Program-made: the position numbers and the translations under genes
Shown here: positions 2,177-55,529 of the stretch, one piece after another
How positions within the stretch are numbered: the stretch's first letter is position 1
How the letters are laid out: each line of letters begins with the position of its first letter
Source of the DNA: Octopus sinensis
Taxonomy: Eukaryota
NCBI RefSeq assembly: GCF_006345805.1
Contig: NC_043007.1
Coordinates: forward strand, 13,330,001 to 13,394,000
Direction: 5' to 3'
DNA length: 64,000 nt
Notes under the pieces: model-generated
What the model saw: the letters and a program-made list of their open reading frames with translations, nothing else
What the model was told of the DNA's origin: nothing
Database searches by the model: none

Positions 2177-5100
2177 CTGAAAAGGAAACAAAAACAAAAT
2201 AGTTAGAAATTAATCATCAATTGTCATTTCTCTTACATTATTTACACTTGACGGATATTTGTTCTCATCTTGTTTGTTCTAACGGTTCAGATGATATATC
2301 CTCCAGCCTTTATCAGGTGTCTTGGGGAAATTTCGAACCATCTTTACCTCCTTCCATGCAACTTCTGTCCACCCTTATATAATGTGGGGTGGTCAATCTC
2401 CTTTATAGCAAGACACTTGTGCTTGTCCCTCTATCATACCTTAGCCTCTGAAAAAGGGGCTTTTTCCCTTTATTTCCCTGTTATTTTCCTGTCTTACAAG
2501 TGCCAGTGGCATGGAAAAAGTACCCAGTTTACACTGCAAAGTGGTTAGCATTAACCCCTTTGACACCGGTATTACCCATTGATAAGGACCAGCTATGCTT
2601 AGGGGACATTTGGAGAAGATGATGCTCAGGCACCAATTGATGGCCATATCCATGTAAAACTTATTGAAACGTCAATTTATGATGATAACTGTTCTCTAAT
2701 GAAACATCAATTCATGATGTCTGCCATTTAGGGGTTAAACAAATAAATAAATATATAACTCACGGAGTGGTTGGCGTTAGGAAGGGGCATCCAGCTGTAG
2801 AAACACTGCCAGACCAGACTGGAGCCTGGTGCAGCCCTGGCTTCTCAGACCCCGGTCGAACCGTCCAGCCCGTGCTAGCACAGAAAACGGACGTTAAACG
2901 ATGATGATAACAGCTATTAATAGGTGTAATTTCATTTTTGATCTTAACCCCTTAACGCCGGTATTACCCGAAGCATGCGAGACACCACTCCAGTTTTTTT
3001 AATCTAATGAGGCCACGCAAATACACAAGTGCCAACGAGCTCGCGTCTATTTACGTTCACCGTTGCAATAACATAGCGTCGTACATTTACGTCTACTGGT
3101 TTATGAAATGGGAAGAACTCCGTCGGTCACGACGACGAGGGTTCCGGTTGATCCGAATCAATGGAACAGCCTGCTCGTGAAATTAACGTGTAAGTGGCTG
3201 AGCACTCCACAGACACATGCACCCTTAACGTAGTTCTCGGGGATATTCAGCGTTACACAGAGAGTGACAAGGCTGGCCCTTTGAAATACAGGTACAACAG
3301 AAACAGGAAGTAAGAGTGAGAGAAAGTTGTGGTGAAAGAGTACAGCAGGGATCACCACCACCCCCTGCCGGAGCCTCGTGGAGCTTTAGGTGTTTTCACT
3401 CAATAAACACTCACAACACCCGGTCTGGGAATCAAAACCGCGATCCTATGACCGCGAGTCCGCTGCCCTAACCACTGGGCCATTGCGCCATGGTTTATGA
3501 AAACGAATTATGTGAAGCTATTTATCATAAATGAATTATTCTGCTCAAGTTCAGCCACGTTCGGATGGTGCTTTTTACATGTCACCGGCATGGGTATCAC
3601 AACTACAATTCAGGTATCACAACAACGATTATAAATATCAGGTGAGGCATTGATTTTCACTTACCAATGATTGATACTGTCCCTTGTGATAATTGAGTTT
3701 GGCCAAGAAAAATTTAAAAAGGTCTCCTAAGTTAGCCGTTAGTGTCTGTTGGATTTCTCGTCGCCGCTGTTGTGGAATGCTCTGAAATGCAATGACATCT
3801 TCAACGACTCGTAGAAAGACCATAAGAACCAGCTCAGTTTGAGTTTCCTGTAGAAGAGAGAATAAAAAAAAGATAAATCATTTCACAATATCATCATCAT
3901 CATCGTTTAACGTCTGTTTGCCATGCTGGCATGAGTTGGACGGCTTGACAGGAACTGGCAAAACCAGGGTCTGCCCCAGGTTCCATAGACTAGTTTGGTT
4001 TGGTTTCTATGGCTGGATTCTCTTCCTAATGCCAGCCACTTTACAGAATGTACTCTTTACTCTTTTACTTGTTTCAGTCATTTGACTGCGGCCATGGGAC
4101 AAACACAGACACACATACATATACATATATATATACATACACATACATACATACACCGCCTATAATAGAATTGGTTCGACTGTGGCTTTGAAGATTTCAA
4201 GTTGGAAATCTCTACTTAGAGACTGAACCTAGAATTATGTGGTTGTGAAGCAAACTTCAGACAGCCATGTCTGTATTGAAATAGACCAGTCCAACCTATG
4301 CCAGAATGGAAGAATGGACATTAAGAATGTTGGTAATATCACACAAAACCCCTAAAAAGAAAAAAAATTTTGAATACAACACAAACCCCTTGACGGCTTA
4401 GTATTTCCAAATCTTTTAGTAACGTTGCCCAAAGTTGAGGCCAATCTCTTTTAAGAATTTCTACAGTTATCCGAGACACTGCATCTTTAATATGATGTTC
4501 TTCCACCAGAATACCTTGTGTTCCCTGAAGAAATAAAAGAGAGAAGAAAAGATGTAAGGAGGAGCCACCAATAATAAATAACATTGTAAACAAGAACAGA
4601 ATTATAGGAAGTTCTTCGTCAAAGAGTTTAGGAACTGGAATAGTGGTTGCTATTGGCACTGTTTTGTGGATGTTGGGAAAAATTGATATTCTTCTGTGCC
4701 CTTTAAGCCTTTAGCATTCAGGTTCCTCTCTCTCTCTTTTTACCCCTTTACTTGTTTCAGTCATTTGACTGCGGCCATGCTGGAGCACCGCCTTTAGTCG
4801 AGCAAATCGACACCAGGACTTATTCTTTGTAAGCCTTGTACTTATTCTATCGGATCTCTTTCGCTGAACTGCTAAGTTACGGGTATGTAAACACACCAGC
4901 ATCAGTTGGGGTGACAAACACAGACACACAAACATATATACACATACGTATCTTACAGAGATTTGGACCGACTGAGACCCGGCTTGATGGGGTGCCCAGG
5001 AGGAATTGGCAATATACCAACAAATAGTGAGTGCAGCAACATGATGTGATGGCACATGGCACCACCAACACACATACACCTGACCTGATGAGAAACTTAA

Positions 5101-15811: not shown

Positions 15812-16689
15812 GGTACTACTTGAAAACAGTGGTCCCGGTGCGCGCACTCGCGTAGTCGCGCGTTCGCGCTAGCTAGTCATGACTAGTCGATCCTTACTTT
15901 GTGTTTTTGTTTGTGATTTACTTTGTTTTAAAAAATTATTTTCGGATCTTTTCGCTTTGACCGGCAGATTTTTAAAATAATTTCTTTGTAACTTAAACAC
16001 TTTTAAACTTCGTATACTGGAAGAATGTGTTTATAAAACAACATCTTTTTCTCTCGGCTTTCTTGAGAAAATTCTGTAGTTTGTAAGATATTTGTTGTTT
16101 ATTTTCTTGCATTTCGGTAATTTCAACCAATGTGGTCCCATGTGGTCTAGTGGTTAGGATTCCTGGCTTTCACCCAGGCGGCCCGGGTTCGATTCCCGGC
16201 ATGGGAACGTTAATTTTTAGAAGGCGGCGACTTGGCAGAATCGTTAGCACGTCGGGCGAAATGCTTAGCGGTATTTCGTCTGGCGCTACGTTCCGAGTTC
16301 AAATTCCGCCGAGGTCGACTTTGCCTTTCATCCTTTCGGGGTCGATAAATTAAGTACCAGTTACGCACTGGGGTCGATGTAATCGACTTAATACCTATGT
16401 CTGTCCTTGTTTGTCTCCTCTGTGTTTAGCCCCTTGTGGGTAATAAAGAAATAGGTAATTTCAACCAATCAATGACGTCTATTGAAGAAATTATTTTAAA
16501 AATCTGCCGGTCAAAGCGAAAAGATCCTTATTTACTTTTTTGTGTTTTCGTGTTTTATTTACTTTGTATAACAAAAATTACTTATTTTGTGTTTTATTTA
16601 CTTTGCTAGGTAGTCGTCGTAGGATCGATTAGCGCGGATGCGCGACTACGTGAGTGCGCGCACCTGGACCACTGTTCTCAAGTAGTACC
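15812..16689. mobile_element. MITE family A (GGTACTACT TIR, 9-bp TSD) carrying nested insertions
   Basis: Long imperfect TIRs; TSD ACGTTTAAA/ATGTTTAAA; contains MITE B copy 15944-16527. Confidence 0.88.
16136..16207 (+). tRNA. tRNA-Glu(TTC), 72 nt, structurally intact
   Basis: TCCCATG/CATGGGA acceptor stem; CCTGG-CT-TTC-AC-CCAGG anticodon arm; CCGGG-TTCGATT-CCCGG T arm; TGGTCTAGTGG A box; TTTTT at 16214-16218. Confidence 0.93.
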
Positions 16690-28486: not shown

Positions 28487-40514
<12,028 letters not shown>

Positions 40515-44153: not shown

Positions 44154-44923
44154 ATGGTTGGCAGTCCGTTGGTTATGACGATGAGGGTTCCAGTTGATCC
44201 GATCAACGGAACAACCTGTTCGTGAAATTAACTTGCAAGTGGCTGAGCACTCCACAGACCCGTGTACCCTTAACGTAGTTCTCAGGGGAGATTCACTGGC
44301 CCTTCAAAATACAGGTACAAGAGCAACAGGAAGAAAGAGTGAGAGAAAGTTGTGGTGGAAGAGTACAGCAGGGTTCACCACCACCTCCTGCCAGAGCCTC
44401 ATAGAGCTTTAGGTGTTTTTACTCACAACGCCCAGTCTGGGAATCGAAACCACAATCCTACGACTGCGAGTCCGGTGCTCTAACCACTGGGCCATTGTAC
44501 CTCCACAATATATATATATATATATATACACACAAATGTGTATCTGATAGAGTAACCGATGACTCATGTAATGTAACCAAAGATTTCCTTCCTTTCTCTT
44601 ACCTGTCTTCAAACTTGATTAATTACCTGTTTACTTATTCCTGATGAAGGGGACATGTCAGTGTGAATCTAAAGGAGTCATACCAGTCAGGTGGTTCTGG
44701 CAACGAGCACGCTTTTGAAAATAGAAAGGGCTGTATAACAGTAGCATTCTTCCCTTTCATGGGACTGTCACATTAAGTTGACAACACACTGTCACTTTAT
44801 CGTGCTGCTACTGCATAAATCTCTCCATGAGATTTAGAAATATATTATTTCTATTTCCATAATGTTATATATTTTTATATTCTGCAGCTTCCCTTGCATA
44901 TTTACCGGGCGAAATGCGTAGCC

Positions 44924-45474
44924 GTATTTCGTCTGCCGCTACGTTCTGAGTTCAAATTCCGCAGAGGTCGACTTTGCCTTTCATCGTTTTGGGGTTGATA
45001 AATTAAGTACCAGTTACGCACTGGGGTCAATGGAATCGAGTTAATCCATTTGTCTGTCCTTGTTTGTCCCTTCTGTGTTTAGCCCCTTGTGGGTAGTAAA
45101 GAAATAGGTATTTTGTCTGCTGTTACGTTCTGAGTTCACATTCCACCGAGGTCGACTTTGCCTTTCATCCTTTCAGGGTTGATAAATTAAGTACCAGTTA
45201 CGCACTGGGGTCAATGGAATTGACTTAATCCGTTTTTCTGTCCTTGTTTGTCCCTTCTGTGTTTAGCCCCTTGTGGGTAGTAAAGAAATAGGTATTTCAT
45301 CTGCTGTTACGTTCTGAGTTCAAATTCCGCCGAGGTCGACTTTGCCTTTCATCCTTTCGGGGTCAATTAAATAAGTATCAGATACGCACTGGGGTCGATG
45401 TAATTAACTTAATCCCATTGTCTGTTCTTGTTTGTCTCTTCTGTGTTTAGCCCCTTGTGGGTAGTAAAGAAATA
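44924..45474 (+). repeat. Head-to-tail array of three 184-nt SINE family D bodies
   Basis: Units start at 44924, 45108 and 45292. Single copies at 16221-16453, 38148-38368 and 63800-64000. Confidence 0.9.
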
Positions 45475-45535
45475 TATTTATTTATATATAATTAATTACT
45501 AGGTTTTGTTGTTTTCAGATTGTCACCTCCAGAGA

Positions 45536-45696
45536 ATGGGTATCACTGGTCTGTTGCCATTCCTTAAGAAGATCCATGTACCAACAAATATATCACAATT
45601 CCAAGGAGCAACTGTTGCGGTGGATGTGTATTGCTGGCTTCACAAAGGAGCATTTTCTTGTGCTGAGAAATTGGCGTTTGGAGAGGACACAGATCA
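45536..45696 (+). CDS. EXO1: EXO1 coding exon 1 (161 coding nt; exon starts at 45519)
   Basis: TTTTCAG acceptor ends at 45518; [53 protein letters not shown]; GTAAGT donor, phase 2. Confidence 0.97.
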
Positions 45697-48600
45697 GTAA
45701 GTAGAACTTTACAAGACATTGTCCTTCATGCTGCCTGTCTGTCCAGAACGCCCACATTTGTATGTATGTCACTGTATTGGCATCACTTTAGTTCTTAAGC
45801 ATTTAATCCTGCCATCTCTACCCTAAATAGTCTACCTGATTTACGGGTGGGTGCTGTAAAGTTCTTGGCGTTAAGGGTATCACAAAATGCCTGATTGGAG
45901 GCCCAAACTTCCAAGTTCTTTTAAAGGGCTTAGAAAAACTGAAGGACCGCTGAAATAGTGTGTGAATCTGAAATGGGAATATCTTCAGTAAAATCATAAT
46001 TAACTGATCTTCCTGTATTTCCTTTTACCCAAAGCCAGGAACTTTTCAGTACTTCGTCATATGTTCAAACTGGCCATGTCTCACACTTACCCTACAGTGT
46101 CATTGTAAAATTACACAATCACATCATTGAAACGTTAGCACGCCGGGCAAAATGCTTAGCAGTATTTCGTCTGCCGCCACGTTCTGATTTCAAATTCCGT
46201 TGAGGTCAACTTTGCCTTTCATCCTTTCGGGGTCGATTAAATAAGTATCAGTTACTCACTGGAGTCGATATAATTGACTTAATCCGTTTGTCTGGCCTTG
46301 TTCGTCCCCCCTATGTTTAACCCCTTGTGGGTAGTAAAGAAATAGGTATTTCGTCTTTATGTTCTTAGTTCAAATCCTGCCGAGGTTGACTTTGCCTTTC
46401 ATCCTTTCGGGGTCGATAAATTAAGCACCAGTTGTGTACTGGGGTCGATCTAATCAACTGCCCCCCCCTCCCCCAAAATTTTGGGCCTTGTGCCTAGAGT
46501 AGAAAAGAAAGCTATGAGATATTGCATGATTAATTCAAAACAATGTGAATAAACAAGTTTTATATTTGATAGAGAAAGATGAATTCTAAAGGGTCTACGC
46601 CTCACTGCTCCATGTTTGCAGAGTGAGACGGAATTTATTGAGGCGGGTTTTCTGTGGATGCTCTTGCTGTCACTAACCTTCCTGCTTCTAAGTGAGATCA
46701 TATTTCACTGTGACCAGGCTTTAACACTTCAGCATTTTAACTGGCCATATCTGGCCCAAATATTCTACCTGTTTGTTGAAACCAACCAGGTCCAGCCTAT
46801 CACACTTACCCTTCAATGCCATTCTAAAAACATTCAATCACATCATCAAAATTTCAAAGCTACCAGATAAAGCATGATTAATTAGCAACAATGTGAATTA
46901 AAAAAAAAAAAACATTACATTTGGCAGAGCAAGCTGAATGCTAAAGGGTTATTGATTTTAGGTAAAATAAATGAATGGTTGGCGTTAGAAAGGGCATCTA
47001 GCTGTAGAAACTCTGCCAGATCAAGACTGGAGCCTGGTGCAGCCATCTGGTTCGCCAGCCCTCAGTCAAACCGTCCAACCCATGCTAGCATGGAAAGCGG
47101 ACGCTAAACGATGATGATGATGATAAATGGTTGATCACTATTGACCTCAGGTGGTTGCAGTAGAATTTCTTGTTAGTGGAGCCTAACCATCTCACATTTG
47201 ATGTCTAATTACTTTGTCATAAGTTTTGATATTTCACTTTCTTAACAGTTTACTTTACATTTTAGCAGTTAAACTAGCCATATCCGGCCCAGATATTCTA
47301 CCTTGCTTTCCGTTCAAACCATCTAGATTTGGCCTCTAGCGCTTGCCCTGCAACGGCATTCTAAAAATTAACAATCTCATCATGGAAGTTTTGAAACTCC
47401 GAGACAATGCATGATAAATTCAAAACAGTTTGAATAAATACGCATTATATTTGATTGAGGGCTCAGAGGGCTTTTGTTTCTTCATTTTCTTCATGTCATC
47501 ATCATCATCATCATCGTTTAACGTCCGCTTTCCATGCTAGCATGGGTTGGACGGTTCAACTGGGGTCTGGCGAGTCCGAAGGCTGCACCAGGCCAGGCTG
47601 ATCTGGCAGTGTTTCTACAGCTGGATGCCCTTCCTAACACCAACCACTCCGAGAGTGTAGTGGGTGATTTTATGTGCCACCGACACAGGTGCCGGACGAG
47701 GCTGGCAGACGGCCACGCTCAGATGGTGTTTTTTATGTGCCACCGACACAGGTGCCAGACGAGGCTGGCAGACGGCCACGCTCGGATGGTGTTTTTTATG
47801 TGCCACCGACACAGGTGCCAGACGAGGCTGGCAAACGGCCACGATCGGATGGTGTTTGTTACGTGCCCACAGCACGGAGGCCAGTCGATGCAGTACTGGC
47901 TACGGCCACGTTCGGATGGTTTTCATGTCAATGTTTAAATTATGATAGATCTTATTTTTCTCCTAAATTTTGTTTTATAGGTATATATACTATTGTATGA
48001 AATATGTCAACTTTATGATCAGCAAAAATTTGAAGCCAATCCTTGTGTTTGATGGCTGTCATCTTCCTTCCAAAAAAGACGTCGAAGACAGCAGAAGAGA
48101 GTAAGTGACATTTTTTTATTCAGCTGTTTATTTGCATAAACTCATTCTGTCAGAGTTAATTTACTCGTTAGCAAATAATTTACGCAATTTAAGTTGCTAA
48201 CTTTGAAAGTTTTTGTTATCTTTTATCTTTTACTTGTTTCAGTCATTGGACTGTGGCCATATTGGGGCATCGCCTTGACGGGTTTGGTCAAACAAATTGG
48301 CACCAGTACTTATTTTCAAGTCTGGTATTTTATATGTCCCTTTCATCAAGCTGTTAAGGTATGGGGATATAACCAACCCAACACTGGCTCATTCTCTCTC
48401 TATTTCCTCTTATTGCTCTCTGTCGAAGAGTGTAGGATCAAAACGTAAAAGACTTTTCCATTTTTCCTGAGTGTCAAACTAAATACACTTGCTTGTTGTT
48501 CATACATTCCTGTCTTCATCTTTTGTTTTTTTTATAAATTTGAACTATATATGTATTTGTTAATGCATGAAAGTCTTGGACCTTGAGCCACTCTGATACT

Positions 48601-48933: not shown

Positions 48934-51900
48934 TCATCATCATCATCATTTAGCGTCCGTTTTCCATGCTAGCATGGGTTGGACGGTTCTACTGGGGTCT
49001 GTGAAGCCAGAAGGCTTCATCAGGCCCAGTCAAATCTGGCAGTGTTTCTACGGCTGGATGCCCTTCCTAACGCCAACCACTCTGTGAGTGTAGATATATA
49101 TATATATGTATGTATATATAATCAAAATGAGGGTGAAAAATTGGATATTAATTTGATAACATCAATTTTAACACCAGTGGTCCAGCATATAAAAAATACT
49201 GAAATTCAATAAATAGTATTTCATACATAAATATAAGAGGGAATTTTTTTAACCACTAGGTGGAAACCCTTATGCTAGAAGAAGATCTGCTATGGTAGAC
49301 CATAGCAGATCTTCTTCTAGCATAAGGGTTTCCACCTAGTGGTTAAAAAATTCCCTCTTATATTTATGTATGAAATATATATATATTCATTTGTATAAAT
49401 GCAAATTGCAGGAGTGGAACAGGTAAAATTCCAGGTTAGATATGTTTCCTAAGCTAGCAGATCCTCAACAAGGGCTACTCACTCAGCCAGCTACTCGTCA
49501 AGCCGAAGATACCTTAATTATATGAAGGTTACCTCGTTGTTTGGGAACCCCCAAGTTAACTTACTGAAGATGTTATTTGAAATGAGTCTTGAAGCCAGAT
49601 GAACAGTGTAAGACAGATTTATTTTTGTTTCATGATAGCCGGCGAAAAGTTTACCGTCAAAAGGCTGCACAGTTTTTGAAAGAAGGCAAACGAAGTGAAG
49701 CTAAGGAATGTCTCCAGAGGTGTGTGGATATTACTCCAGACATGGCTAGAAAACTCATTGAGGTAAGAACAGTAGATTTCTCTGCATTCATCTCTTTGCT
49801 TTTACCACATTATGTCGGTGAACAGTGCATGGCACTCTTTTCGATGGGGATCAGCTTGTAATAAGGATGTTCAGTCGCTCTTCCTTGGAGACTCAGCATG
49901 ATAACATTTGTAGTGGTTAAGTGTGTATCATGGAACACGGATGCAAATGGAATGTGTAGGTCTTAAAAGTGAAAAATGCGTGAGCCGATCCATGATTAAA
50001 AATGATTTTGGCTATTGCCAGCGTCGCCCCGACTGGCCTCCGTGCCGGTGGCACGTAAAAGCACCATCCGTTCGTGTCCGTTGCCAGCCTCGCCTGGCCC
50101 CCGTGCCGGTGGCACGTAGCACCATCCGTTCGTGGCCATTGCCAGCCTCGCCTGGCCCCTGTGCCGGTGGCACGTAAAAGCACCATCGTGCGGGTGGCAC
50201 GTAAAAAGCACCCACTACACTCACGGAGTGGTTGGCGTTAGGAAGGGCATCCAGTCGTAGAAACACTGCCAGATCAGACTGGGCCTGATGCAGCCTTCTG
50301 GCTCCACAGACCCCAGTTGAACCGTCCAACCCATGCTAGCATGGAAAGCGGACGCTAAATGATGATGACTACATACAGAATGTAAGCAACTGCTACGAGT
50401 TAGAAATATAAACCTTATGGCCATATCACGTTGAAAGCACCGGTTCCTGTCCGATCACCGAGGTTAAGCAACATCGAGCTTAGTTAGTACTTAGATGGGT
50501 GACCGCTTGAGAAACTGTGTCCTCTCCAAACGCCAATTTCTCAGCACAAGAAAATGCTCCTTTGTGAAGCCAGCATGGAGAACGGATGTTAAACGATGAT
50601 GATGATGTTGATGAAACCGAGTACATTTGTGGAAGTCATATATCAGGAATGAATATGTTTGTGTGTGTGAGACAGTAGTCTATCATGGCATTTCGAACAT
50701 TTCTCTCGATCTCTGCGGTTAATTTTTACACATTCACAAATGCAAGCAACCTCTCTTGGTTCCCATGCCAGGGTTATGAAGTGCATAATCCAGTAGAACA
50801 AGTAGAAGTGTGTTGTATACTCCCTATGACTGTGATTGAAGACAATAGTCACAACAGTTTGATACCTCTAATCAAAGGTCCTAAGTATAGTCTTAACCCT
50901 TTCGTTACTATATTACTCTTTTTACTCTTTTACTTGTTTCAGTCATTTGACTGCTGCCATGCTGGAGCACCACCTTTAGTTGAGCAACTCGACCCCGGGT
51001 CTTATTCTTTTTGTAAGCCCAGTACTTATTCTATCGGTCGCTGTTGCCGAACCGCTAAGTGACGGGGACGTAAACACACCAGCATCGGTTGTCAAGCAAT
51101 GCTAGAGGGACAAACACACAAACATATACGCACACATGCACATATACATATATATATATATACATTTATACGACAGGCTTCTTTCAGTTTCCGTCTACCA
51201 AATCCACTCACAAGGCATTGGTGGGCCCGGGCCTATAGCAGAAGACACTTGCCCAAGGTGCCACGCAGTGGGACTGAACCCGGAACCATGTGGTTGGTTA
51301 GCAAGCTACTTACCACACAGCCACTCCTGCGACTATATATTTCTTATTTCTTTACTGCCCACAAGGGGCTAAACATAGAGGGGACAAACAAGGACAGACA
51401 AAGGGATTAAGTCAATTACATTGACCCCAGTGCTGTACATTGCTACTATATTTCTAAGTTAAAAACACCCCTTATGAGTTTCAATTAAATTCTAAAATAA
51501 TCACGAATTTAGGCTGGTTTCATTAAGCAACTGTAACTTTTTTATTTAGCGACATGTTAATGTGATTTTTGGAAAACAATTCAAGAAAAGGTTCTTAATT
51601 TGCATCGCTTTAGTCTCAAAGTAACTCTAATTACAGGTAAATACAGGTGAATCACAAGCTTTTTTCTCGGATTGTTTACTTTCTGTGTAATGGTTTGTTT
51701 CCGCAGATCATGTCATACAAGCTTACATTTGGTTGATTTCTCCATAGCTTTTGTTTAAAAGCCCTCAAATTCAGAATCACTTCTTAATAGCATGAAACTG
51801 TTATCCATTTTAAAAGTTGAAATAAAATCACCAAAGAAAAAAATGTGGAAAAAATTTTCTAAGGCATAGGAGTGGCTGTGTAGTAAGTAGCTTGCTTATG

Positions 51901-53324: not shown

Positions 53325-55529
53325 CGGGCTTCTTTCTGTTTCCATCTACCAAATCCACTCACAAGGCTTTGGTTGGCCCGAGGCTGTAGTAGGAGACACT
53401 TGCCCAAGGTGCCTCACAGTGGGACTGAACCCGGAGCCATGTGGTTGGTAAGCGAGCTACTTAACACACAGCCACTCCTACGCCTGTATATGAAGTGTGT
53501 GAGATAAATCTTCCTTTCGCAGGGTAAATAAACAACATCTGTTATTCCATGTCATTTATATTATCTCCTTGATAGATGAAATATTCAATTTTACTTTCCT
53601 TCTTTTAAAACAGGTGTGTCAAAAACAAGGGATTGATTGCATTGTTGCCCCTTACGAAGCTGATGCTCAGTTAGCCTATTTATCGCAATCTGGGATTGCC
53701 CAGATTGTTGTTACCGAAGACTCCGACTTGTTACTATTTGGTTGTGACAGAGTAAGTTTCTCTCACTGTCTCTCCATTACCATTTTTTTGTCTCTTTCTT
53801 CTTATATTAAATTCGTTTTTCAGATCTTTTCGCTTTGACCGGCAGATTTTAAAAATAATTTCTTTGTAACTAAACACTTTTAAACTTTGTAAACTGGTAG
53901 AATGTGTTACATAAAATATCTTTTTCTCTCGGCTTTCTTGAGAAAATTCTGTAGTTTGTAAGCTATTTGGTCTTTAATTTCATATGACACCGGAAATTAT
54001 TGTTGTTGACAACGCTCTGGCGAAATTGTTTTCACCTTAACAGATGTCACTGATTGGTTGAAATTGCCGAAATGCAAGAAATTAAACAACAAATAGCTTA
54101 CAAACTACAGAATTTTCTCAAGAAAACCAAGAGAAAAAGATGTTTTATAAACACATTCTACCAGTTTACAAAGTTTAAAATTTTTTAGTTACAAAGAAAT
54201 TATTTTAAAAATCTGCCAGTCAAAGTGAAAAGATCCCATTTTTCTATGGTAGCTTTGGACATTTGAATAGACTTGGGGCAATTATTTTATTACTGGGAGT
54301 AGTGGCAGGAGATCTACCTTGAAATAGTGACCTGCCTACAACTGGTGGGCAGTATCTTTTAATTAATGGAGTGAGAGCCTTCATTTGTAAATTAGAGCTC
54401 TAAGTTTTTTTCACTTGCACCCACTACACTCTTGGAGTGGTTGGCATTAGGAAGGGCATCCAGCTTAGAAACCTTGATCAATCAGATTGGGGCCTGGTGC
54501 AGCTGCTGGCTTAAAAGAAATCTGGCACTTATTTTAACCACACAGCCATGTCTGTGCTTTTGGCCATTGATTGTGTCAACACGAATGTCCATAAAAGATG
54601 AAATTTTACCACTTTTAATTCAATACTTTGAAAAACGAATTGAATTTCTTCTTTGCAGGTGATTTTCAAGATGGATTTCTATGGAAATGGCATCATGATT
54701 GAAAAATCCAGACTAAATGAAGCCATTGACATCAGAGATGGATTCTACACCTTCAATAAATTTAGACACTTGTGTATTCTGTCCGGCTGCGACTATTTAA
54801 GTTCTTTACCTGGCATCGGCTTAGCAAATGCTTGTAAAGTATTCAAATTAGCCAGACAGGCAGATCTTAGACAGGTAATTTTTTTTCCAATCATATTTTG
54901 CAATTTATAATTTTTTTTCCCACTTTCTTTGACCTCTCTTTTTTTTTTTTTTTTTTTTTTTGCTTATGTCTACCCCATCATCGTTTAATGTCTGCTTTCC
55001 ATGGTGGCATGGGTTGAATGGTTTGACATGGAACTGGCTAGCAACGAGCTGTCCAGACTCCACCTGTCTGTTGTGGCATGATTTCTACGGCTGGATGCCC
55101 ATCCTAACTCCAACCACTTTACTGAGTGTGCTTTCTAGTGGTTTTAGTGAGGTTTTGAGAATTCTGGCGATTTGCTCTAGTTGAGAAGACATGTCAATCT
55201 AAGTGCATTTGTGGTTGTGGCTAGTGCTAGTGACATGTAAAAGACACTTGATAAATTGTAAAGTGGTTGGTGTCAGGAAGGGTATCCAGCTGTAGAAAGC
55301 AAGCCAAAAGAGACTGGAACCGGGTGTAGCTCTCTGGGTTACCAGCTCCAGTCAAAACTATCTGACTCATGCCAGCATGGAGAGCGAACGTTAAATGGTG
55401 ATGATGGGTAAGAGGCACAGAACCTCCGTCCCACTGCGCGGCACCTTGGCCAAATGTCTTCTACTATAGCCTCAGGCCGGCCAAAGTCTTGTGAGAGGGT
55501 TTGGTAGATGGAAACTAAAAGAAGCCCGT

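Follow-up and report, generated by a model that had tools for sequence, protein, structure and literature searches.

In this work we have examined a short composite sequence that lies inside the gene for exonuclease 1 (EXO1) of Octopus sinensis. The sequence belongs to a stretch of 64,000 nucleotides (nt) of the RefSeq assembly GCF_006345805.1 (contig NC_043007.1, positions 13,330,001 to 13,394,000 of the forward strand), which is referred to here as the window and whose own numbering is used throughout. Six coding exons of EXO1 were mapped on its plus strand, at 45536-45696, 47981-48100, 49639-49762, 53614-53751, 54659-54874 and from 56811 onward. The first of them starts with the ATG at 45536, is followed after 45696 by a GTAAGT donor, and its product is the XPG-N start of exonuclease 1. 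The deduced protein aligns with human EXO1 without a gap across 187 residues at 60% identity, and because the alignment is gapless through residue 187, residues can be numbered as in the human protein; a first-pass annotation of this stretch, made from the sequence alone, had used the same numbering. The closest protein matches to the first exon reach 83% identity at best, and the best named proteins are gastropod EXO1 sequences, with 66-74% identity across 316 amino acids. The composite sequence is located in the third intron of the coding region, which separates exons 49639-49762 and 53614-53751. It had been assigned to intron 3, which is correct when coding exons are counted, but the ATG exon has an acceptor site in front of it, so that intron 4 may be the true designation.

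Three pieces follow one another in this intron (Table 1), and the first is the 5′ part of a 5S rRNA sequence. The first-pass annotation had recognized about 100 nt of 5S rRNA that span the internal control region, and a match to the Rfam 5S_rRNA model (RF00001) was indeed found on the plus strand at 50416-50531 (81 bits, E = 1.2e-15, gathering score 38), directly upstream of the second piece. The final ~16 nt of this match are already the beginning of the second piece, and helix I is not formed. The score therefore lies above the threshold for a 5S gene, but the molecule is not complete, as helix I is missing, and its helices and loops are not intact: there is a C·A mismatch in helix II, the CUCGUC of loop C reads CCUGUC, and GGGAAUAC reads GAGAA-AC. 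In an alignment to human 5S, box A and the intermediate element show substitutions at conserved G residues, and box C is near to functional sequences. Some of the differences from the human molecule are compensated or match the 5S rRNA of Drosophila. No other 5S-like sequence was found in the 64-kb window.

The second piece is an antisense copy of part of the first coding exon of EXO1. The two segments are reverse-complementary at 61 of 61 positions and the identity ends sharply on both sides, exactly as had been reported for this intron. Codons 33-53 had been listed as the copied portion; of these, codons 33-52 are complete and codon 53 is represented by its first base only. The copy shares its first base, C50515, with the 5S part and with a short direct repeat described below, and its last seven bases with the third piece. 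It is the only reverse-complement match of at least 14 nt between the six mapped coding exons and the window, and antisense copies of the other mapped exons were not found there. We rejected a chance origin of this perfect inverted repeat, since only about 1e-27 such cases are expected in 64 kb (our own arithmetic, approximately 4e9 position pairs multiplied by 4^-61). The copied segment begins 4 nt from the 3′ end of the exon (45692-45696), which is a weak hint of an RNA template ending near there or may be a coincidence (roughly 1 in 16).

The third piece is the 3′ tail of a short interspersed element (SINE), which runs into a (GAT)n microsatellite. About 20 copies of this family are present in the window, and alignment of the 3′ ends of 20 copies gave the consensus CCCATGCTAGCATGGAAAGCGGACGTTAAACGATGATGATG. 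As only the last ~45 nt are present, the copy in the intron is severely 5′-truncated. Its tail differs from variants present in the window by no more than about one CpG transition, and no copy there has an identical tail. The motif GCCAGCA, at which the antisense copy and the tail overlap, had been proposed as a microhomology. We consider it to be a genuine one of 7 nt because several members of the family, those at 3897 (minus strand), 55404 (plus) and 58532 (minus), read GCCAGCATGGA; the copy at 1443 (minus) reads GGAGAACGGACG. The heads of these SINEs (47668-47891, 50060-50175 and others) consist of tandemly repeated units of 58-63 nt in variable number. The literature searched contained no mention of the SINE sequence, the SINE was absent from three contigs of ENA assemblies carrying EXO1 protein matches (one of the 83% matches to the first exon and two weaker ones), and metagenome scans with a 36-mer of the exon and with the SINE tail gave no matches.

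The microsatellite of the tail adjoins a flank that is unique in the window; neither 50374-50415 nor 50618-50905 belongs to a repeat family there. Such contact of a SINE 3′ end and its microsatellite with a unique flank is characteristic of target-primed reverse transcription. The (GAT)n repeat points to a microsatellite-tailed partner among the long interspersed elements (LINEs), possibly an RTE-like one; in octopus, the LINEs reported to be active are RTE elements with microsatellite tails (PMC9115989). An open reading frame (ORF) fragment at 38873-39292 on the plus strand ends in a C2H2-like motif, resembling the C-terminus of some LINE ORF2 proteins; it has no Pfam match and could be a LINE remnant. 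A fuller copy of the SINE family ends at ~50368, which leaves about 40 nt before the 5S part begins. Downstream, ~290 nt from the insert, starts a second abundant repeat family (50907-51100 and ~20 further sites), whose closest copies are 87-94% identical.

The arrangement of the junctions is central to the interpretation. The pentanucleotide GAAAC occurs twice and brackets a unit of ~102 nt composed of the antisense exon copy and the SINE tail. The repeat can be extended to TTGAGAAAC against TTGATGAAAC downstream (9/10 with one indel), the TTGATGA part overlapping the GAT repeat. Two copies elsewhere in the SINE family have clean target duplications, of 8 and 9 nt; these lengths are compatible with TTGA(T)GAAAC and fit the longer version slightly better than 5 nt. 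The sequence after the second GAAAC resembles the 3′ end of 5S rRNA with p of 0.02-0.04 when the window is taken as the null, compared with p of about 0.3 for the continuation as found, that is the exon copy. When GAAAC and the 5S 3′ end are scored jointly, p is 3-5e-4, and only 44-61 of 127,931 window positions score as well. The first-pass annotation had described a 5S promoter fragment fused to the antisense piece. There is probably no fusion of this kind, as GAAAC flanks the unit and the 5S sequence appears to resume in register after it (p about 4e-4). For the same reason we regard the 5S sequence as the earlier of the two, probably a lone intronic pseudogene that is older than the insert and served as its landing site.

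Table 1. Elements of the composite sequence in the EXO1 intron, and its source in the first coding exon
Feature	Position	Strand	Basis	Remark
Source segment in EXO1 first coding exon	45632-45692	+		Codons 33-52 and base 1 of codon 53; 4 nt short of the splice donor
5S rRNA pseudogene, 5′ part (about nt 1-103)	50413-50515	+	Rfam and alignment to human 5S	Spans the internal control region
Putative target-site duplication GAAAC, upstream copy	50511-50515	+	Read from sequence; joint test	
Antisense copy of the source segment	50515-50575	+	Inverted pair I12	Perfect
Microhomology GCCAGCA between exon copy and SINE	50569-50575	+	Tail alignment	7 nt; SINE variants read CATGCCAGCATGGA
3′ tail of 5′-truncated SINE	50569-50612	+	Families D6, I18, I19; tail alignment	GCCAGCATGGAGAACGGATGTTAAAC, then (GAT)n
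Putative target-site duplication GAAAC, downstream copy	50613-50617	+	Read from sequence; joint test	
Tentative 3′ remnant of the 5S pseudogene	50618-50640	+	Alignment, window-based null	CGAGTAC(ATT)TGTGGAAG against 5S CGGGTGCTGTAGGCTT
First run of at least four T downstream of the 5S start	50723-50727	+		TTTTT; would be the earliest RNA polymerase III stop if the 5S promoter were active

How could a piece of an exon become inverted in an intron of its own gene? We propose, with a probability of roughly 0.6-0.7, that the 5S pseudogene was split at about its nt 103 by a single insertion of ~102 nt, in which the antisense piece of the exon was combined with the SINE tail. In the process known as twin priming, synthesis starts separately from both ends of a staggered break, and a microhomology then unites the two products. 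Here, a retroelement 3′ terminus lies at the flank, and a 5′ segment antisense to the SINE tail is joined to it by 7 nt of microhomology. The order of events and the template, RNA or DNA, that we infer would be as follows. A decayed 5S rRNA pseudogene was already present in the third coding intron of EXO1, and a SINE RNA inserted at about 5S nt 103 by target-primed reverse transcription. The bottom-strand nick would have primed copying of the last ~45 nt of the SINE, which comprise the tail recognized by the LINE and (GAT)n, while the top-strand end, ...GAGAAAC, would have been extended by 61 nt on a template with the sense sequence of the first coding exon. This template might have been EXO1's own RNA, abundant at its own locus, and twin priming would then have taken place on a second RNA; or it might have been the DNA of the exon, located 4.8 kb upstream and reached after end resection and fold-back. 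The new strands would then have annealed through GCCAGCA and been sealed, leaving the GAAAC duplication, perhaps of 9 nt, and the order 5S(1-103), antisense exon, SINE tail, rest of 5S. The RNA-templated and the fold-back DNA-templated route fit equally well, and they are indistinguishable because the copy crosses no splice junction.

On this account the insertion is young. A very recent templated insertion had been one of the explanations offered for the perfect identity, and it fits the 0/61 differences from the exon as well as the small distance of the tail from other variants. As we infer, the insertion is most probably neutral, so that the complementarity between exon and intron and the position behind a 5S promoter would be accidental consequences of the event and not a built device.

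Several observations weigh against this account. The putative 3′ remnant of the 5S pseudogene is short and decayed, an Rfam scan of 50600-50670 found no 5S fragment on its own, and the complementarity of the remnant to the 5S 5′ end, which would form helix I, is not significant (p 0.39). Local alignment with human 5S scores 101 on the sequence from which the insert has been excised and 99 on the sequence as found; the scores are nearly equal because the exon copy itself begins with the 5S-like CTGTGTCC. The duplication length typical of the SINE family is poorly defined, since most copies in the window are too old to show a clear duplication. We also considered the contrast in age between the 5S part and the insert as independent support and judged it weak: several of the 5S differences look compensated or are Drosophila-like and may be native, so that the argument for an older 5S sequence loses much of its force. 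Finally, there is a rival repeat of 5 nt, AAACC (50410-50414 and 50615-50619), which flanks the whole unit of 5S, exon copy and tail.

The insertion belongs to a known kind, the chimeric or twin-primed insertions that contain an inverted fragment of a gene, with the difference that the fragment here comes from the host gene itself and is nested in a 5S pseudogene. Among LINE-1 insertions, antisense pieces of tRNA, 5S rRNA and mRNA at the 5′ end have been ascribed to twin priming, which applied to 2 of 17 mRNA/LINE-1 chimeras (PMC13174262). Twin-primed LINE-1 and LINE-1 chimeras (Ostertag & Kazazian 2001; Law & Burns 2026, PMC13174262) resemble our case in the sense-oriented 3′ end, the 5′ segment of opposite orientation, the flanking duplication, putative in our case, and, in the proposed mechanism, two cDNA syntheses that start from the ends of one staggered break and meet at the inversion point. 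They involve a LINE-1 with poly(A), whereas the octopus insertion involves a SINE with a (GAT)n tail and presumably a microsatellite-tailed LINE partner, possibly RTE-like. It also differs in its occurrence in a mollusc, in the origin of the inverted piece from the gene at the insertion site, in the very short insert and in a duplication of only 5-9 nt. LINE-1 insertions can likewise carry inverted copies of nearby genomic DNA after resection of the break end and fold-back (bioRxiv 10.1101/2024.12.14.628481). Such local inversions and inverted duplications, which result from remodelling of the break ends produced in target-primed reverse transcription, share with our case the retro-insertion accompanied by inverted nearby DNA and the short microhomology at the inversion junction. 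In them, however, the DNA is adjacent to the break and anneals to itself as a hairpin, whereas here the source is 4.8 kb off and only 61 nt were copied, so that either long resection or a template of RNA would be required.

Could the 5S part, the exon copy and the tail have arrived together? The AAACC repeat stands directly before the 5S start and directly after the tail, as would be expected if a unit of 205 nt (about 50415-50619) had been inserted at once as a single tripartite retrocopy with AAACC as its target duplication. Reverse transcription would have started on the SINE tail, switched to an exon-antisense template, switched again to 5S at ~nt 104 and run to its 5′ end, and the site before insertion would have read ...ATATAAACC joined to GAGTACATT... 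(also given as ...TATAAACC joined to GAGTAC...), without 5S. We regard this as unlikely, even though the 5S core is well preserved at 81 bits and 5S rRNA is known to take part in chimeric retro-insertions; according to the passage of PMC13174262 that cites Kojima 2018, fusions of 5S with a LINE tail can seed new SINEs. The order of parts also agrees with chimeric retrogenes formed by template switching (5S, U6 and U3 with LINE-1, Alu and mRNA; Buzdin et al. 2003) and with the 5S-derived SINEs (SINE3, Kapitonov & Jurka 2003; Kojima 2018), whose architecture is a 5S head with an internal promoter, an unrelated body and a tail recognized by a LINE. Template switching does not, however, produce an antisense middle segment such as the one found here. 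In comparison with the 5S-derived SINEs, the window holds one copy of 5S-like sequence and one of the 61-mer against ~20 of the ordinary SINE, the evidence favours a 5S sequence that was present first and then split, and the tail does not close the predicted RNA polymerase III transcript, whose terminator lies 110 nt beyond it. A one-step origin would moreover require a template antisense to EXO1, of which none is known, in addition to two switches. It would have to be by chance that the 5S sequence ends at a GAAAC matching the target, and likewise that the flank looks like the 5S 3′ end (p about 4e-4). The changes at conserved 5S sites, namely the helix II C·A mismatch and the altered loop C, are unexpected in a recent rRNA copy beside a 61-mer without a single change, and the usual orientation of 5S in LINE-1 chimeras is antisense to the element (PMC13174262). 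In the insertion into an existing 5S pseudogene, which we prefer, sense sequence of EXO1 is sufficient as template for the inverted piece.

An origin without reverse transcriptase appears still less probable. A double-strand break in the 5S pseudogene may have been patched by microhomology-mediated or polymerase-theta-like repair or by template switching during replication, with the exon supplying 61 nt and a neighbouring SINE copy about 45 nt. The junction microhomologies of 1 nt and 7 nt would agree with such a scar, as would the position of the donor exon, close by and in inverted orientation as is typical of template-switch repair, and the many SINE tails within a few kb. Against this, the SINE piece is the exact 3′ terminus, with the microsatellite lying against an apparently duplicated target as in target-primed reverse transcription, no SINE copy of the window matches the tail perfectly, and target duplications are not normally created by repair.

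More questions are raised by the possible consequences of the insertion, which are compatible with either structural model, as they concern what the sequence does and not how it arose. Both arms of the inverted repeat are on the same strand and within one pre-mRNA, in which they are predicted to form a perfect RNA duplex of 61 bp between exon and intron with -120.7 kcal/mol. In an animal with strong ADAR activity, editing could follow in codons 36-52. Of the 15 adenosines in the exon arm, 10 would alter the protein if edited, and the changes H36R, K37E/R and K45E/R named in the first-pass annotation are indeed products of A-to-G changes in the copied segment. Intronic complementary sequences and extensive recoding in cephalopods are both established (PMC5705066). 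The intron might hold a newborn editing-complementary sequence that directs recoding by ADAR of H36, K37, K45 and others or that affects splicing; it might also, or instead, give rise to a 5S-promoted antisense RNA of ~310 nt made by RNA polymerase III. That the sequence is functional in one of these ways seems to us quite improbable. Slightly better, though still doubtful, are the chances that the accidental capture of the host exon created such a sequence and that the duplex on nascent EXO1 pre-mRNA edits codons 36-52, in the DNA-binding N-terminus, or changes splicing.

The perfect identity is accounted for by youth alone. A duplex of this length and perfection would be expected to be edited by ADAR promiscuously and not at selected sites. 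The arms are separated by 4.8 kb and two introns, and nearby inverted SINE repeats would compete for pairing, for example pair I1, with 154 nt, 95% complementarity and a distance of 1.1 kb. Known editing-complementary sequences, which direct editing at selected sites, are conserved and imperfect and usually occupy the intron next to the exon. The 61-mer resembles those of the GluA2 Q/R site and of Drosophila syt1 (PMC5705066) in being intronic, complementary to an exon of the same pre-mRNA and capable of forming double-stranded RNA, but it is perfect, apparently new and two introns away. Transcription by RNA polymerase III from the 5S part is possible, considering that box C is close to functional sequences and that the first run of T, which had been placed near 50725 and is indeed found there, follows 210 nt past the 5S end of the junction. 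The altered conserved G residues of box A and the intermediate element, in what is a lone intronic pseudogene, speak against it. A scan of the window for bacterial-type promoters and terminators was irrelevant to RNA polymerase III.

Lastly, inverted chimeras with microhomology are a known amplification artefact and the 61-mer is perfect, but an assembly or library chimera, which had also been put forward to explain this identity, is very unlikely, since two precise switches within 102 nt between colinear flanks, a putative 5-nt target duplication and a complete retroposon 3′ end form a biological signature that an artefact would not give.

Other repeats in EXO1 also form inverted pairs. The ~20 SINE copies in 64 kb give rise to many long pairs within its introns. 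A tandem repeat of 184 nt (44905-45486 and 46143-46459) is present in three copies directly upstream of the ATG exon and in two copies in the next intron, and an inverted copy of it lies at 51345-51433, in the same intron as the insert, with arms of 88-89 nt that are 90-93% complementary (pairs I4-I6 and I9). These pairs bracket coding exons 1-3 and could favour back-splicing or bring the 61-nt arms together. Elsewhere in the window there is an isolated tRNA-Glu(TTC) gene at 16136-16208 on the plus strand (Rfam, 66.5 bits, with ARAGORN in agreement). Two exon-like ORFs on the minus strand, 1904-2197 and 4339-4659, match Pfam Xpo1, the first above the cut-off and the second below it (19.4 against 22.7 bits), which suggests that the left end of the window carries a minus-strand exportin gene.

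The octopus intron offers a well-resolved non-mammalian case of a retro-insertion that carries an inverted piece of the gene in which it landed. If the insertion into a 5S pseudogene took place as we propose, the break-end chemistry described for LINE-1 would also operate with a microsatellite-tailed LINE/SINE pair in a mollusc. The accident has placed side by side a head with an RNA polymerase III promoter, a body derived from a gene and a LINE tail, which are the raw material of new SINEs. Perhaps the duplex does drive editing of EXO1, and in that case, which we consider as a possibility only, the birth of an editing-complementary sequence by retroposition would be directly observable.

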